In this document: positions 19,674-63,867 of the stretch, piece by piece
Position numbering within the stretch: the stretch's first letter is position 1
Layout: each line of letters begins with the position of its first letter
Assembly: GCF_000315625.1 (NCBI RefSeq)
Contig: NW_005434641.1
Location: forward strand, 325,113-389,112
Direction of reading: 5' to 3'
DNA from: Guillardia theta CCMP2712
Lineage: Eukaryota > Protista > Cryptophyta
Length of the DNA: 64,000 bases
Notes under the pieces: model-generated
The model's input: the letters and a program-made list of their open reading frames with translations, nothing else
Told to the model about the DNA's origin: nothing
The model's database searches: none
Position numbers and translations under genes: made by a program

Positions 19674-20876
19674 AACTCAGTGACGCGGACATGGGATAGA
19701 ATTGTGTTATAATGAATATTCTTGCAACGACGAGGCCCTGTGGTCAGCGACAGTGAACTATCGAGTGAGAGCTGCGACACAATCCTGTAATGCACGTCAA
19801 ACAAAACTCGAAATATAGCAACGAGCACGACCAATCCTTCCTTGAGCGACTTGAGGGCCAACGGCAACTGATTCTTGATGATCACGGATCTGGTTGCACG
19901 AGTTAGGCCTCGAAGCAATCCTCCCTTCGAGCCTTACTTGGGCTTACGAGGTTGGAACAGTCCGGCCGGAGCACCAAGAAAGACCAAACCGTCTTCTGTC
20001 AACATGATCCTGGCTCCATAGACTGCAAGATCACCGTCATTGCAAACACGTTTCAGCGCGTCCTCCGCTACCTGTATTCTGAATCTCCATGTACGGTTTT
20101 GTTCCGTCGTCCCACACGGTCCACTCATGGAAGTCCAGCCATTCAGCCAACAGGCTCCTTGAGCGCGTCTCATTCTGAAGTGCCTCGAGACTTTTAGGTA
20201 GAGGAAGAGAGCTTGCGTGAGTCACGCTCAACAACAACATGAAAAACTCACACATCCGGGGCCAAAAAGCCATCTTCAGCATCCCAGTGTATCAAGTTGT
20301 TGCGGACTAGAGGGATAGGCGAAATGAAAGGGATCGGCTCTCCACTGATTGAGACCCATGTCCCGTTACCTTCAGCTCCATGTCAGCAAAGTGACAACCA
20401 GATCAGTCCAACACGTACTGTTGTCGTGTTCGATGATTCTCACACTGTTTCAAATCAAATCAAAATTGATAAAAGGCTTGATGGGACAGAACACTCACTG
20501 GTTTGTACAACTGTTGAGCTCAAGCGCTGTCCCTAAGGTCTACCATGCATCATTTCAATGGCTTGCACGCACTTGCAACGTACCCGGTGTCGGAACAAGG
20601 CAACATTCCCAGAGCTCCTAGTGGTCAGGTAGTGATAGTCCCACAAGTCACCCACTCGTCCGGAATCTACAGCCATGTTGGCATGCATCAGGCACATGGC
20701 GGCATCAGCTTTAATCCCCTCCCTTCACCTCTCAGGCTCAACTTGTGTCCGAACTTGTCCAAGGCTCCTCCTCGCACTCTGAGGCACAGCGAAGTCGAGA
20801 AGTGTTCTGACAAGCGAGCAGCACCAAAGAGCGGGATGAAGCAGGCGAGCAGCAGGCTGAAGTCTCTTATTCTCAT
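19670..20876 (-). CDS. Hypothetical multi-exon protein with signal peptide and LRVRGG motif
   Basis: MRIRDFSLLLACFIPLFGA...SLCLRVRGGALDK; the frame can be carried through successive short GT-AG introns (DSGRVGDLWDYHY.., GTWVSISGEPIPF.., EWLDFHEWTVWDDG.., VYGARIMLTEDG). 3' end uncertain. Confidence 0.55.
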
Positions 20877-46613: not shown

Positions 46614-48176
46614 ATGCGGTCCAAGTCGATCGCTTCCATGCTTCCTCGCCTTGCCACGGCTATTCTTGTTGTCTTGACTTTTTCTGCACCCACAACTGTC
46701 ATGTCCTTCCAGGTTGTTGCGCTCTCGAGCATGGGGACGCTCAGAAGTGGGTCTGGGACGAGGGGAGCTCGCTCTGGTTGTGGGTTCAGACTCAACAAGA
46801 TTCTCGGAGGCTTCGCTTCCTCCCGGTTCTCATGCTCTTCCGAGCAGGAACAAGACATGTGCTCTTGGAAGGCTCTAGGAGGCAGAATGACTCTGCAAGC
46901 TCTGCCGGACCCGTCGGACAAGATTTCTAAGGAGCAATTGAAGGAGGGGGTGGTTGGAGGAGAGGACAAGGTCGGGATCGAGCAGCAGGTAGTGGAGGAG
47001 AGTCTCATGGGGGATCATGTCGTCTCCGAGTTGTGGGGGGAGTGGACGGAGAAGCAAGTGAAGGCTGCGACGCTGCTATGGGTGGAGCAGTTCGTGATCG
47101 GTCTAAAGCTCTGTCCTTTTGCTGCCGAGGCCGTGAAGGGTCTGCGGGTATCCGTCTCGTCTGCGCTCGACCGCGACATGGCGCTGGACAAGTTCGACCT
47201 CGAGCTTCGCTGGATCGTCGGGCTGGACAAGTCAAGTCCAGCCTGCACTCTGATCGTTTATCCTCCAAACCTCTTCGAACACAACGGCAAGACGTCTCCT
47301 CTGTGCTCGGGGGAGAGCAGCGATGCCAGCAGACGGACGCCGGAGATGTGCCAAGGCTTCGAGGGCTTCATGTCACTGGCTACAGATGCGCGCGAGATGG
47401 CACAACAGTTCAATGCGGTAGGGGAGCAGGAGGAGGTTGTAGCAAGCGGCTGACACGATCGCAGGCACATGGCCAAGACATAGAGACCGAGACTCTGTGA
47501 GTGAATGCTTGCTCAGGCCCTTCCCTCCTCCTCTTCCTTGATCTCTCTCCTGCTCATCCTCCTTTCGCCTCATTCTTGCTCCAGGTTGCTCACGTTTCAC
47601 CCCAACTCGACTTTCAGTGACTCGCCCTCGGATCCTGCTGACTTCGCGCTGCGCTCGCCGTTTCCCACGGTGCTGATTCTGAGAGGAACGGATGTCAGGA
47701 ACGCAGAGGAGATCTGCGAGCAGCAGGGGCGGGTGACGGAGGACATCGCGATCGCGAACGAGGCGAGGCTGCGGCAGGTGGGGTACGAGGAGCTCTCAAG
47801 GATCTTCACTGGCCTCTTCTCCTCGTCTCGCACCTCCGAAGCCCAGCAGATCCTGAGGCAGGCGCAGGAGGAGCGCGAGGCCGTGCTGGCGTCCTCCACG
47901 TACCCGCTCTCAGACCCGATGGCTGACGGCATCGACGGCATCGACGGGCAGGACTTGAGCCACGACCCCGTCGAGCTCATCCACGAGTGGGGAGGAGACG
48001 CGAGCGAGGATACGGCATGGGTGGAGTACCCGGCAAGGGCGTCTGTGAAGCCGCCGCCGCTGAGGGAGGAGGAAGAGGAGGGAGGGGAAGAGCTCAACGC
48101 ACAAGACCTGCAGAAGGTTTACGATCCTTTCGGCTATGGATGTGAGGAGGAGAATGGCGAGTCGAAAACAACTTAG
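46614..48176 (+). CDS. DUF1415-family protein with probable bipartite plastid-targeting presequence
   Basis: WVEQFVIGLKLCPFA and TFHP...DPADFALRSPFPTVLILR are DUF1415 signatures; N-terminal signal peptide ending ..VMS-FQ, followed by an S/R-rich transit-like region. Confidence 0.8.
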
Positions 48177-59640: not shown

Positions 59641-60938
59641 TCTCCCTCTATCACGCAAATAACCCGTCATACATCGAATCCTCATACTCATCATCATCAT
59701 CTCCATCATCATCATCATCATCATCATCTCCATCATCATCTCCATCATCATCATCTCCATCATCATCATCTCCATCATCATCTCCATCATCATCTCCATC
59801 ATCATCACTNNNNNNNNNNNNNNNNNNNNNNNNNNNNNNNNNNNNNNNNNNNNNNNNNNNNNNNNNNNNNNNNNNNNNNNNNNNNNNNNNNNNNNNNNNN
59901 NNNNNNNNNNNNNNNNNNNNNNNNNNNNNNNNNNNNNNNNNNNNNNNNNNNNNNNNNNNNNNNNNNNNNNNNNNNNNNNNNNNNNNNNNNNNNNNNNNNN
60001 NNNNNNNNNNNNNNNNNNNNNNNNNNNNNNNNNNNNNNNNNNNNNNNNNNNNNNNNNNNNNNNNNNNNNNNNNNNNNNNNNNNNNNNNNNNNNNNNNNNN
60101 NNNNNNNNNNNNNNNNNNNNNNNNNNNNNNNNNNNNNNNNNNNNNNNNNNNNNNNNNNNNNNNNNNNNNNNNNNNNNNNNNNNNNNNNNNNNNNNNNNNN
60201 NNNNNNNNNNNNNNNNNNNNNNNNNNNNNNNNNNNNNNNNNNNNNNNNNNNNNNNNNNNNNNNNNNNNNNNNNNNNNNNNNNNNNNNNNNNNNNNNNNNN
60301 NNNNNNNNNNNNNNNNNNNNNNNNNNNNNNNNNNNNNNNNNNNNNNNNNNNNNNNNNNNNNNNNNNNNNNNNNNNNNNNNNNNNNNNNNNNNNNNNNNNN
60401 NNNNNNNNNNNNNNNNNNNNNNNNNNNNCTTCTCCTCCTCCTCCTCCTCCTCCTCCTCCTCCTCCTCCTCCTCCTCCTCCTCCTCCTCCTCCTCCTCCTC
60501 CTCCTCTTCCTCCTCTTCGCTTCACAACTGCTTCATGCTCATCATCCATCGGACGTCTTGGAGCAAGTCAAAACTACCCCCACCCCCCCATAACCCTCAC
60601 CTCCCACCCACCCCCACCGGTGCCTCAACTGCCGGGAGTCTCATCACAGTCACCGGCCCGGACCACAACCCCATCACCCACACCACCCCACCCATTGATC
60701 GACATCACCCTCTATTTTACCATGATCAGGAAGAACATTTGTAGGTAGGGGTACTAGAAAGTAGGGGTGAAGAGAAGGTGGGGTGCAATCGATGAGTAAA
60801 ATTTGATTTCTGAAGTCGCTTCTCCTTACGAAGGAGAGGAAGGACCAGGACCAGGACAAGGAGGAGAAGAAGGACAAGGAGGAGAAGAAGGAGAAGGAGG
60901 AGAAGGACAAGGACAAGGACAAGGTGCAGCTATTCAAC

Positions 60939-63867
60939 ATGCGTGAGCTTGTGTCGCTTGTAGCTCTGGTCTTGCTGCTCTCCGCAAGTCCCGACTGCTG
61001 CGATGCTCTCCGGGCCCTGAGGCTGAGAGGAGGTTCAGACGCTATGCTGGATGAGAGACTGAGCTCGATGAAGCTGTCGGAACTTCAGAAGGAGCTGCGA
61101 GCGAAGGGCCTTAGCACGAAAGGCCTCAAGGCTGAACTCATCAAGCGCCTCCAGGACTCCATGCACGAGCCTTCAAAGGATGTTGGAATAAAGAGAAACG
61201 CACCGGATGATCCCGGGGAGGGAAACATGCAGGAGGAAGACACTGAAGGAGAGCTCCCGATGAAGCAACCGCGAACTGACCGACCTTGCGTGCAGCATTC
61301 TGACGAGCATCAGTCTACAGGGACGGGAGAAGAGCCTTTGATCAAGGTGCGGCAGACCAACCAGGCAAAAATAGTGATCGAACGAGAGGGAGACGATGGT
61401 GTAGTGAAGGTGATCAACGGGTATGACTTGAAGGATCGATGTAGAGCCGCAGGCTTCAAGTTCGACGCGGCCGAGCGTGCTTGGGTCATCCCCATCTTCG
61501 CACTGCTGCATGGGATGGGGGTGTCGAGCTTGGATCAGATTGAGCACGACGACATCATGGACTACCTGCAGAGGATCGAGGTCACTGAAGCTCTGGCTTC
61601 GCAGCCGAAAGAACAAGAAGAGCTTGAGGCTGAGGTGGACGGGGACATGGTTTCTCTCAAGGGCAACACGTATGCTTGGAAAGACAAGATCCGGTCTGCA
61701 GGCTTCAGGTGGGACTCGACGCGCTCCTGCTGGCGAAGGCCTCTCGATCAAGTCCTGCTCTGGCTCAAAAGCGTGAGGACCGGGGGCGCTGACGAAGAGG
61801 GAGATGTAGAGGAACACGTCATTCGAGCAATCACTGAAATTAGCCAAGAGGAGCTCGCAAGAGCAAGCCCAGCACAAGTCGAGCAGCTTCAACCATACCT
61901 GAAAGTCGACAAGGAAGAGGTTGAGAGTTTTAATGGCTCGCCTCTTGTCCTCACAATCTCTTGCAGGTTCGCATCTACAACTCCTACAACCTCAAAGATC
62001 ACCTGCGGCAGCTGGGCTTTCGCTTCAACGTGCAGGAAAAGTGCTGGAGCTCGCGGCTAGAGGACGTCAAGCGGCTGCTGCCTGATGAAGACCTGACGTT
62101 GGACGCGATCATGGGCGTCATGCCGGATGACAAGCAGCTCGTGCCGCAGGCTCCCTTCCTGTCCATCAACGGCACCGACGTTGAAGTCCACAACTCCTAC
62201 TCCATGAAAGACTCGCTGCGCTCCATCGGGTTTCGATTCGATGCGGCGCGAGCTTGCTGGATCAGACCTGTAGAGGAAGTCCTGACCCTGCTCGAGCTGC
62301 CAGACTCCTCCAGCATCACCCTCGAGTTGCTCACGGAAACCAGCAAGAGAGCAGGTGCGACCCTCCTCTCCTCCTCTCCTCCTCCTCGCTCTCCTCCTCC
62401 TCTCCTCCTCCTCGCTCCTCCTGCTCCTCTCCTCCTCCTCGCTCTCCTCCTGCTCCTCTCTCTGCTCTTCTCTCATCCACTCATACAGTCGAAGGCGAGA
62501 TCGCGCAGGAGAAACTTGCTCCACATAAATCGGCAGCTCCCTCGCTCAAGGTGGAGGGCGACGAGCTCGCGGTGTACAACTGCTACGAGGTGAGAGGAGG
62601 AGGAAGGGGAGGAAGTTGCCTGACTTGACCGTCAGATCCGCGAGAAACTTCGAGCCGCTGGCTTCCGGTGGAACTCCGAAGGTGCCAAGTGGACGAGAAA
62701 CTTGCAGGATGCGATGTATGCCTTGGGTATTGACGGTACGATGAGAGCGGCGCGAGGGCAACAAACTGACGGAGAGGATCAGACGCATCTGATCTGACTG
62801 TGGAGAAACTCCTCTCCTTGGAAGCGACCGGAGAGGGTCGGGAGCAAGGGAAGGAGAAGGCTTCTCCCCACCTCTCTGTGGTCGACGGGGAGGTGCTCGT
62901 GTTCAACTCGTATGAGGTCTCCCGCGCTCCTCTGCTGCCTCCCAGTCAAGGTCTCCTGCAGGTGAAAGACAAGCTCCGCGCCATCGGCTTCCGCTGGGAC
63001 TCAAGTCGAGGCGTGTGGTCGAGGCCTACGGTGGACACGATGAGCTTGCTGGGGGTGACGGAGGAGGAAGCGATCTCCCTAGACAAGCTGCTCGCTGTCG
63101 ACCCGCTCAGTCAGCAGGCTGAGCAAGCGCAGCCGACGGTTGAGGTTGTGAACGAGGAAGTGCTGGTGCTCAACTCTTACTCGGCAAAAGAGGAGCTCAA
63201 GTCCCTTGAGTTCCACTTCGACAGGTAACCCCCAGCCATCATCGCCCGCCTCCTCTTCTTCCCCTCCGCTGCTTCGCATCCACATCCCGGTTGCTCCGCG
63301 AGCTCCGGGTTTCTGCTGCTGCTTCCTCTCTCCCCTTGCTGTAAACTTGTTGAGAGTTGACTCACGGGCAGTGAGCGGCGGGCGTGGGTGAAGAGCGTGG
63401 TGGAGGTGAAGCAGATGCTCGGGCTGGAGGACCAGATGGACATTGACATGAACAAGCTGCTCGCACACGCAGAAAAATTGCGAAGTCAGGCCAAGGAGGG
63501 CGAGCAGCTCGAGGAGGGAGAACATGCCCAGGAGCAGGAGCAGATGGAGGAGGGGGAGGGGGGTGGAGGGGCTAAGCCAGCGGATCGCTCTCCTTCACCT
63601 GACGTGGTCGATCACACGCCTGGTCCTCTTCCTCCTCTGCTGACAGACAGCTACTGACCCAACGCAGATCTGCTGTCGAGCATGGGGCAGAGCCTGCAAG
63701 GCTGGTCAAGTAAGTAGAGCCTCCCTCCCCATCCCTCCTCCCTCTTCTGTTCCTCCTGCCCTTCCCACCCCCTCTACCTCCTTGACCCCCTCCCTCCGTC
63801 CCTCCCATATGACAGAGATGGCAGAGACGTCAGAGAAGGCGTAGATGATGCATGGAGGGAGAGTTGA
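60939..63867 (+). CDS. Signal peptide + LRLRGG + SAP domain + seven tandem DUF5710/HARP-like repeats; putative organelle-targeted DNA-binding protein
   Basis: LSSMKLSELQKELRAKGLSTKGLKAELIKRLQ is a canonical SAP domain; seven copies of V.v.NsY..Kd.lR..GF.[FW]d.....W.r recovered across exons. 3' end approximate. Confidence 0.8.

Follow-up and report, generated by a model that had tools for sequence, protein, structure and literature searches.

A ubiquitin-tail-like LRGG motif at the end of leaders of periplastidial type in the cryptophyte Guillardia theta

A window of 64,000 nucleotides from Guillardia theta CCMP2712 (contig NW_005434641.1, positions 325,113 to 389,112 of the forward strand) was analysed, and positions given below without a prefix are those of this window. 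Near its end lies GUITHDRAFT_108314, a gene for a protein with a SAP domain, and the element in question is the leader of this protein, in which a signal peptide is closely followed by the hexapeptide LRLRGG. Translation of 60939-61400 on the plus strand reads exactly MRELVSLVALVLLLSASPDCCDA-LRA-LRLRGG-SDAML. The predicted signal peptide for entry into the endoplasmic reticulum (ER) comprises residues 1-23 (60939-61007), with the n-region MRE, the uncharged 13-residue h-region LVSLVALVLLLSA, which passes the hydrophobic-window scorer used together with the translation, and the c-region SPDCCDA. A very short, transit-peptide-like spacer of three residues (LRA, 61008-61016) leads to the LRLRGG motif (61017-61034, core LRGG at 61023-61034), which is identical to residues 71-76 of ubiquitin, so that 23 of the 26 residues ahead of the motif belong to the signal peptide. 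The SAP domain (residues 40-73, 61056-61157; Pfam PF02037, E value 1.1e-11, 44.5 bits against a gathering cut-off of 23.9) starts seven residues past the GG and is the first folded domain of the mature protein.

A dedicated cleavage predictor was not applied, and signal-peptide cleavage after SAS or after CDA are both possible. The stretch between signal peptide and motif therefore measures 3-9 residues and has a net charge of about -1, which becomes +1 if the motif is included. The residue at position +1 hinges on the same choice, cleavage after SAS giving a proline (neither aromatic nor leucine) and cleavage after CDA a leucine.

Exon 1 spans 60934-61919 on the plus strand according to transcript contigs of the runs X1, X2 and X6. 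It is followed by exons at 61967-62354, 62489-62589, 62636-62735, 62783-62916, 62962-63224 and 63372-63621, with more beyond, and all introns are of the GT..AG type. Spliced contigs from three separate, probably transcriptomic, studies cover 60934-61917 without a gap, indicating that the ATG, signal peptide, motif and SAP domain belong to one expressed exon. After refinement of the junctions to GT..AG, the spliced reading frame is open for 739 codons, and its N-terminus is that of the public model GUITHDRAFT_108314. A GA-rich low-complexity stretch (GGAGAA/GGACAA, 60830-60933) forms the 5' untranslated region just ahead of the ATG, and intron 2 (62355-62488) is taken up by a CT-rich stretch that is complementary to it in composition; both were left out of read mapping as repeats. 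In a relative of 94% identity, the public gene call in ENA (P0001) starts at Met36, directly past the leader. Gene models that start at the first methionine after a leader hide the targeting information and can in this way conceal proteins of the periplastidial compartment (PPC).

The body of the SAP protein is formed by seven copies of a unit of about 70 residues (V.V.NSY..KD.LR..GF.WD....W..P plus a helical tail; 61401-63621, plus strand). Resemblance of the unit to DUF5710 (PF18974) was weak, with 9 of 29 repeat units matching below the cut-off (best E value 0.003; best score 19.9 bits against a cut-off of 26.5), and the unit is not assigned to that family. The AlphaFold model of the unit (29 units, pLDDT 84) showed a strand-helix-strand-strand-helix-helix arrangement, for which neither comparison with PDB sequences nor Foldseek gave a significant match. 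The repeat family occurs in several cryptophytes and in metagenomic proteins of up to 1585 residues.

In the six frames of the window LRLRGG occurs once and the wider pattern L.[LV]RGG three times, two of them after a methionine and a hydrophobic segment. The second of these belongs to an unrelated gene on the minus strand, with its ATG at 20876 and a leader (20876-20766) that consists of the signal peptide MRIRDFSLLLACFIPLFGAA, an 11-residue spacer and LRVRGG (20783-20766), and reads MRIRDFSLLLACFIPLFGAA...SLC-LRVRGG-ALDKF. A GT donor roughly 14 codons past the motif is the probable end of this leader exon. Pfam searches with the downstream open reading frames (19937-20291, minus strand) gave only a weak hint of CBM53 (E value 0.1) as cargo domain; CBM53 is a starch-binding module, and if the hint is real the gene would encode a small PPC starch-binding protein. 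An earlier reading of the window, made from the sequence only, had described a signal peptide followed by the exact ubiquitin C-terminus ahead of the first folded domain of the SAP protein, and had claimed the same layout for a second, unrelated gene. Translation and the Pfam placement of the SAP domain bear out the former, and the latter holds with the variant LRVRGG.

The same reading had proposed that L.[LV]RGG be counted relative to signal peptides across the proteome, and such a count was carried out on a sample of the genome. A degenerate DNA pattern for LRLRGG gave 353 sites in the whole genome, compared to control counts of 255 with the DNA reversed and 193 with the peptide permuted to GGRLRL. 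The sample consisted of 10 kb around each of the first 20 pattern sites in contig order, together with 30 LRVRGG-type loci. A signal-peptide-like start was defined by a fixed rule (in-frame methionine, no stop, and a nine-residue uncharged window of mean Kyte-Doolittle hydropathy of at least 2.2 starting within 22 residues). By this rule 10 of 17 true LRLRGG sites had such a start 26-60 residues upstream, and by eye 12-13 of the 20 pattern matches were led by a signal peptide. Measured over 354 kb, the background for the rule was 2.4% when all positions were counted and 5.1% when only those with 30 or more open codons upstream were, which gives binomial p values of 1e-12 and 1.7e-9, respectively. 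LRVRGG-type sites showed no overall excess (146 against 141 in the control) and stood behind a signal-peptide-like start in only 1 of 30 cases by the rule (Fisher p = 3e-5 against LRLRGG; 1-2 of 30 overall). LRVRGG is a rare variant of the leader motif. One further leader, ending in MRIRGG, was found unselected in the flank of sampled locus L023.

Scaling 12 of 20 to the 353 sites gives about 210 G. theta genes with such a leader (95% interval 127-286), shorter xLRGG variants not being counted. Counts of a pattern for the LRGG core (3413 against 4081 in the control) were dominated by noise and uninformative; from the measured spacer composition, LRGG is expected by chance in about 0.2% of 40-residue spacers. 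The possibility that the leaders are copies of one DNA element was rejected, because the six motif codons vary synonymously and the leaders have nothing else in common. At C23:594893-602045 five identical pattern sites lie about 1.7-1.8 kb apart, and at C38:474104-485951 nine lie about 1.3-1.8 kb apart, each indicating a tandem array of near-identical units.

The anatomy of the leader class was measured on 18 examples. The span from methionine to GG was 26-60 residues, and in leaders other than that of the SAP protein the motif lay 8-41 residues past the signal peptide. The position directly ahead of the motif is mostly occupied by a small residue; the one past GG was variable (S, G, M, Q, A, E, L, Y, T, D, but never proline in this set), and right behind GG the composition turns acidic or resembles that of mature proteins. 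Spacers were rich in serine (14%) and arginine (12%) and poor in lysine (2.2%), and 13 of 17 G. theta spacers had no lysine at all. At +1, inspection by eye showed neither an aromatic residue nor leucine in about 15 of the 17 other leaders with the motif and in the SAP orthologues from Rhodomonas and Hemiselmis.

An exhaustive HMMER search with exon 1 of the SAP gene returned full-length relatives of 30-66% identity from Hanusia phi, Rhodomonas lens and Hemiselmis andersenii, and three metagenomic sequences. A comparable hydrophobic segment opens each of the orthologues, and the signal peptides and spacers of the seven aligned N-termini cannot be aligned; L-R-G-G is invariant in all seven, 8-18 residues ahead of the SAP domain. 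The positions in front of it are variable (LRLRGG, RLRGG, PSLRGG, MSLRGG, LSLRGG), and since only L-R-G-G is invariant, the conserved core is LRGG and not the full LRLRGG. The exact ubiquitin tail stressed by the sequence-only reading is thus present in this gene, but is reduced to LRGG in what is kept between genera. Searches with a methyltransferase (L010) and a RETICULATA-like protein (L016) from the sample returned only G. theta or near-identical sequences, and cross-genus conservation is therefore established for the SAP family only.

Proteins of the cryptophyte PPC enter the ER co-translationally, lose their signal peptide and cross the periplastid membrane through SELMA, a ubiquitin-dependent machinery derived from ER-associated degradation. 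Those in which the +1 residue is not aromatic remain in the PPC. As cited in PMC4494062 and PMC6105332, the PPC-type bipartite signal joins a signal peptide to a transit-peptide-like (TPL) stretch without an aromatic residue or leucine at +1 (Gould et al. 2006; Gruber et al. 2007).

In the curated PPC set of the ASAFind 2.0 supplement, all six G. theta leaders that directed green fluorescent protein (GFP) fusions to the PPC in Phaeodactylum end in LRGG. These are the leaders of starch synthase ugg-t (MSLRGG/AGSD), elongation factor EF-1alpha (gt_84077, which is locus L015, sampled blindly in the current study; LRLRGG/GKEK), 14-3-3 (LRLRGG/VDGE), RRM1 (LRLRGG/FRGD), cyclophilin CyP (LRLRGG/GLPY) and Ubc8 (gt_97471; PLRGG/ANPT). 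The sCdc48 leader of the same set carries MRLRGG. Entries without the motif either have an aromatic +1 residue (hemE, iddi, sPEL) or have the mature domain right behind the signal peptide, the latter being inferred by BLAST only. The 101 cryptophyte plastid-type sequences of the ASAFind 2.0 paper hold three copies of the string LRGG, of which two belong to a single fructose-1,6-bisphosphatase (FBPase) entry with a non-aromatic leader, and the comparison of 6/6 PPC-localised leaders with at most 2/101 plastid-type sequences gives a Fisher p of 1.5e-8. Two FBPase paralogues with a signal peptide, XP_005821930.1 and XP_005839318.1, were compared: one is of stromal type (CASA/FMAP) and has no motif, and the other has a non-aromatic leader that ends in LRLRGG, and was counted in a 'plastid' training set. 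The latter is probably a PPC enzyme.

The sampled cargo is of the kind stated for the cryptophyte PPC, the functions of which are translation, nucleomorph maintenance and starch metabolism. In EF-1alpha the GG is directly followed by GKEKHH..IGHVDSGKS, the canonical start of this protein. An alpha-glucan phosphorylase (L006) matched positions 8-127 of PF00343 from 816 nt past the leader ATG (E value 1.5e-44), and its later exons gave an E value of 1.5e-59. The S-adenosylmethionine-dependent methyltransferase of L010, the RETICULATA-like membrane protein of L016 and the SAP protein complete the set. Conversely, leaders of classic stromal or thylakoid type with an aromatic +1 residue were free of LRGG: VMS/FQVV in the window itself (46614-47450, plus strand), ASASA/FMPTTS of a light-harvesting complex gene (L017:9313-9999, plus strand) and ASASA/WSPTF (L012:680-1057, minus strand).

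These data support the view that LRGG marks the end of PPC-type bipartite leaders. The proposal that a signal peptide plus this motif forms the leader of periplastidial and nucleomorph proteins is upheld by the genome sample, by orthologues in four genera, by the 6/6 against at most 2/101 and by the PPC-type cargo. For the SAP protein, the best explanation is that it is nucleus-encoded and destined for the PPC, and probably for the nucleomorph. On balance, although by no great distance, we favour a PPC-class leader whose conserved LRGG end is a processing or recognition element.

Side evidence from a diatom was found in the Thalassiosira pseudonana PPC set (PMC12136025, Appendix S3), in which 5 of 23 signal-peptide proteins carry xRGG near the leader end, adjoining an acidic or mature region: Der1-1 (FDLRGG), TrxH (LSLRGG), sSec14 (FQIRGG), sCdc48-2 (DIGRGG) and sCdc48 (LSARGG). 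A rough binomial p for 5/23 ranges from 4e-5 to 3e-3, depending on the composition assumed. The leader motif may predate the cryptophytes.

Since LRGG is always found where leader and mature protein meet and is the sole constrained element of the leader, it is likely, if well short of certain, that it serves as the recognition and cleavage site of the PPC TPL peptidase. Removal of the TPL in the PPC is assumed in reviews, in which a 'TPL peptidase' is postulated. The signal peptidase would cut in the ER, the protein would pass through SELMA, and LRGG would then be recognised and cut by this enzyme in the PPC. The peptidase itself would be an LXGG-specific cysteine protease of the deubiquitinase (DUB), ULP or UfSP kind, a more tentative step to which, taken overall, we give somewhat less than an even chance. 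A ubiquitin-type enzyme is favoured because P4-P1 (L-R-G-G) equal the ubiquitin tail and because the PPC ubiquitin precursor needs cuts of this type. This precursor, gt_155024, consists of a signal peptide, a TPL spacer, a degenerate ubiquitin-like domain ending in CLRVRGG, and then a canonical ubiquitin (MQVF...LRLRGG) with SY appended. Two DUB-type cuts (CLRVRGG/MQVF and LRLRGG/SY) are thus needed, so that the PPC must hold DUB activity on linear fusions. With ptDUP lacking from cryptophytes, the TPL-peptidase role could fall to the nucleomorph-encoded UfSP-type protease (Gt2_270), a 'putative deubiquitinating enzyme' that is kept in all four sequenced nucleomorphs without an assigned pathway. 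In its broadest form, which is possible but rather doubtful, the hydrolase that matures PPC ubiquitin would also be the TPL peptidase, and a ubiquitin-tail mimic at the leader end would be common to PPC proteins of red-derived complex plastids. The xRGG at Thalassiosira leader ends would make the mimic ancestral and not specific to cryptophytes, and import motor (SELMA) and presequence peptidase alike would come from the ubiquitin system.

Several points weigh against cleavage by a ubiquitin-type enzyme, or against the reading of the leader as PPC-type. The SELMA deubiquitinase ptDUP is absent from cryptophytes, and in Toxoplasma gondii the RGG of PUBL, directly before a ubiquitin-like domain, is neither processed nor required. 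Pfam found no ubiquitin fold upstream of LRLRGG in the SAP leader, and most USP and UCH enzymes cut bare LRGG peptides very poorly. In a weak test, of 47 USP-type and 6 UCH-type matches in the genome none lay beside any of the LRLRGG sites listed for C1-C22 (100 of the 353 sites). Cleavage at LRGG is deduced from the leader sequences. Signal peptides were scored by a simple in-house rule and not by SignalP, and the sample was small (20 + 30 loci). The SAP leader is itself ambiguous, since cleavage after CDA would leave leucine at +1, a residue with which diatom proteins can move on into the stroma.

The strongest alternative, though an unlikely one, is that LRGG is cut by an enzyme unrelated to ubiquitin and that it equals the ubiquitin tail by coincidence. 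An M16 metalloprotease of the MPP/SPP kind would read Arg at -2 or -3 and cut G/G or GG/X, and an Arg-specific protease would cut R/GG. Mitochondrial and plastid presequence peptidases do follow Arg-based rules, and the position of the motif at the boundary of leader and mature protein suits such an enzyme. It would also suit that LRGG alone, and not LRLRGG, is kept between genera, that diatom PPC proteins have A/G/I/L-RGG, so that P4 need not be leucine, and that cryptophytes have no ptDUP. M16 sites are usually loose, however, while the G-G is invariant here. G. theta leaders moreover prefer LRLRGG (about 200) to LRVRGG (about 10), and this difference of about 20-fold suggests that several positions of the tail are read as in ubiquitin. 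The junction in the PPC ubiquitin precursor is also identical.

It is slightly less probable again that LRGG remains uncleaved and acts as a recognition, sorting or retention element, either bound by a component of SELMA or the ubiquitin machinery that reads the ubiquitin tail, or acting as a stop to Toc/Tic transport that keeps the protein in the PPC. The unprocessed RGG of T. gondii PUBL is a precedent, and in the SAP leader, with its spacer of just 3-9 residues, the motif gives most of the positive charge. In diatom presequences N-terminal lysines are reportedly needed for SELMA transport; because G. theta leaders are poor in lysine (2% against 12% arginine), the lysine-ubiquitination route of diatoms may not apply to them, and another handle may be needed. 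Yet the motif, which lies anywhere between 8 and 41 residues past the signal peptide, always adjoins the mature domain, as in GG/GKEK of EF-1alpha and with the GG shortly ahead of the point at which conservation of starch synthase begins. A signal for translocation only should lie closer to the N-terminus, and TPL removal in the PPC is the assumption of reviews.

It is very improbable that the motif is a pro-peptide site in ordinary proteins of the secretory or endomembrane system, with no link to the plastid. Secreted proteins commonly have a signal peptide and then a short pro-region that is processed, but the six tested leaders all reach the PPC, the cargo is nucleo-cytosolic or starch-metabolic (EF-1alpha, 14-3-3, E2, Cdc48, SAP, phosphorylase), and signal-peptide proteins in which the mature domain follows immediately have no motif. 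That LRLRGG is a chance hexapeptide of an Arg/Leu/Gly-rich genome can practically be dismissed, for although the DNA is GC-rich (267 RGG strings in the six frames of the window) and short-core LRGG counts did not exceed the reversed control, the positional enrichment (p <= 1.7e-9), the invariance in seven orthologues and the 6/6 against at most 2/101 all speak against it.

The LRGG leaders resemble the PPC-type bipartite signal in having a signal peptide, a spacer rich in serine and arginine, a mostly non-aromatic +1 residue and PPC or nucleomorph cargo, and several classic test proteins carry the motif. They differ in that the accepted definition and predictors use the +1 residue or a 25-residue window counted from the site of signal-peptide cleavage (ASAFind 2.0) and make no use of an LRGG at the far end, whereas these leaders add a conserved end motif 8-41 residues further on, beyond the current definition.

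The tails of ubiquitin, ISG15 and NEDD8 (LRLRGG or LRGG) are cut by deubiquitinases and proteases of ubiquitin-like proteins, and the six residues of the SAP leader equal residues 71-76 of ubiquitin; for comparison, a diatom ubiquitin sequence ends in hlvlrlrgg. Unlike ubiquitin-like precursors, the SAP leader has a signal peptide and a short unstructured spacer in place of a beta-grasp domain, and because this fold is missing upstream it is to be regarded as a mimic of the ubiquitin tail and not as a member of the ubiquitin family. Viral LXGG-specific proteases with a DUB fold or activity, such as coronavirus PLpro and the adenovirus protease ((M/I/L)XGG/X), are a precedent for a DUB-type cysteine protease that cuts a bare linear L-X-G-G at a domain boundary of a precursor, although in polyprotein processing and not in connection with organelle import. 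T. gondii PUBL, a SELMA-related protein resident in the PPC, likewise has a plastid leader with RGG at its end, and its authors weighed a deubiquitinase site; in contrast to the leaders described here, it is one protein and not a proteome-wide class, and when tested it showed no processing there, mutation being harmless to function. The PEXEL/TEXEL motif of apicomplexans (RxLxE/Q/D, which follows a signal peptide and is the target of an ER aspartic protease) is analogous in layout and function, as a short motif at a variable distance past the signal peptide whose proteolysis marks a cargo class for a special destination, but differs in sequence, protease class, compartment and destination. RxLxE/Q/D does not occur in the SAP leader, in which RALRL and RLRGG misfit the pentamer.

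No description of an LRGG leader motif was found in the PPC-targeting literature surveyed; the 2006 papers that first tested such leaders fall outside this survey, and an earlier mention is possible. The LRGG-ended leader apparently represents a known leader class with an additional, previously undescribed conserved motif at its end. For plastids with four membranes, all that is known of sorting between PPC and stroma is a rule on the single residue at +1, and the PPC leader peptidase has never been identified. The current estimate of about 2,400 cryptophyte PPC and nucleomorph proteins is based on weak criteria, and a strict LRGG, if true, is a far more specific mark for predicting this proteome. 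The motif also defines an expected cleavage site, which makes the question of the PPC peptidase directly testable. If cleavage by a ubiquitin-type enzyme is true, processing of the presequence would be tied to the same ubiquitin machinery that underlies SELMA, and a role would be offered for the DUB-like enzyme of the nucleomorph.

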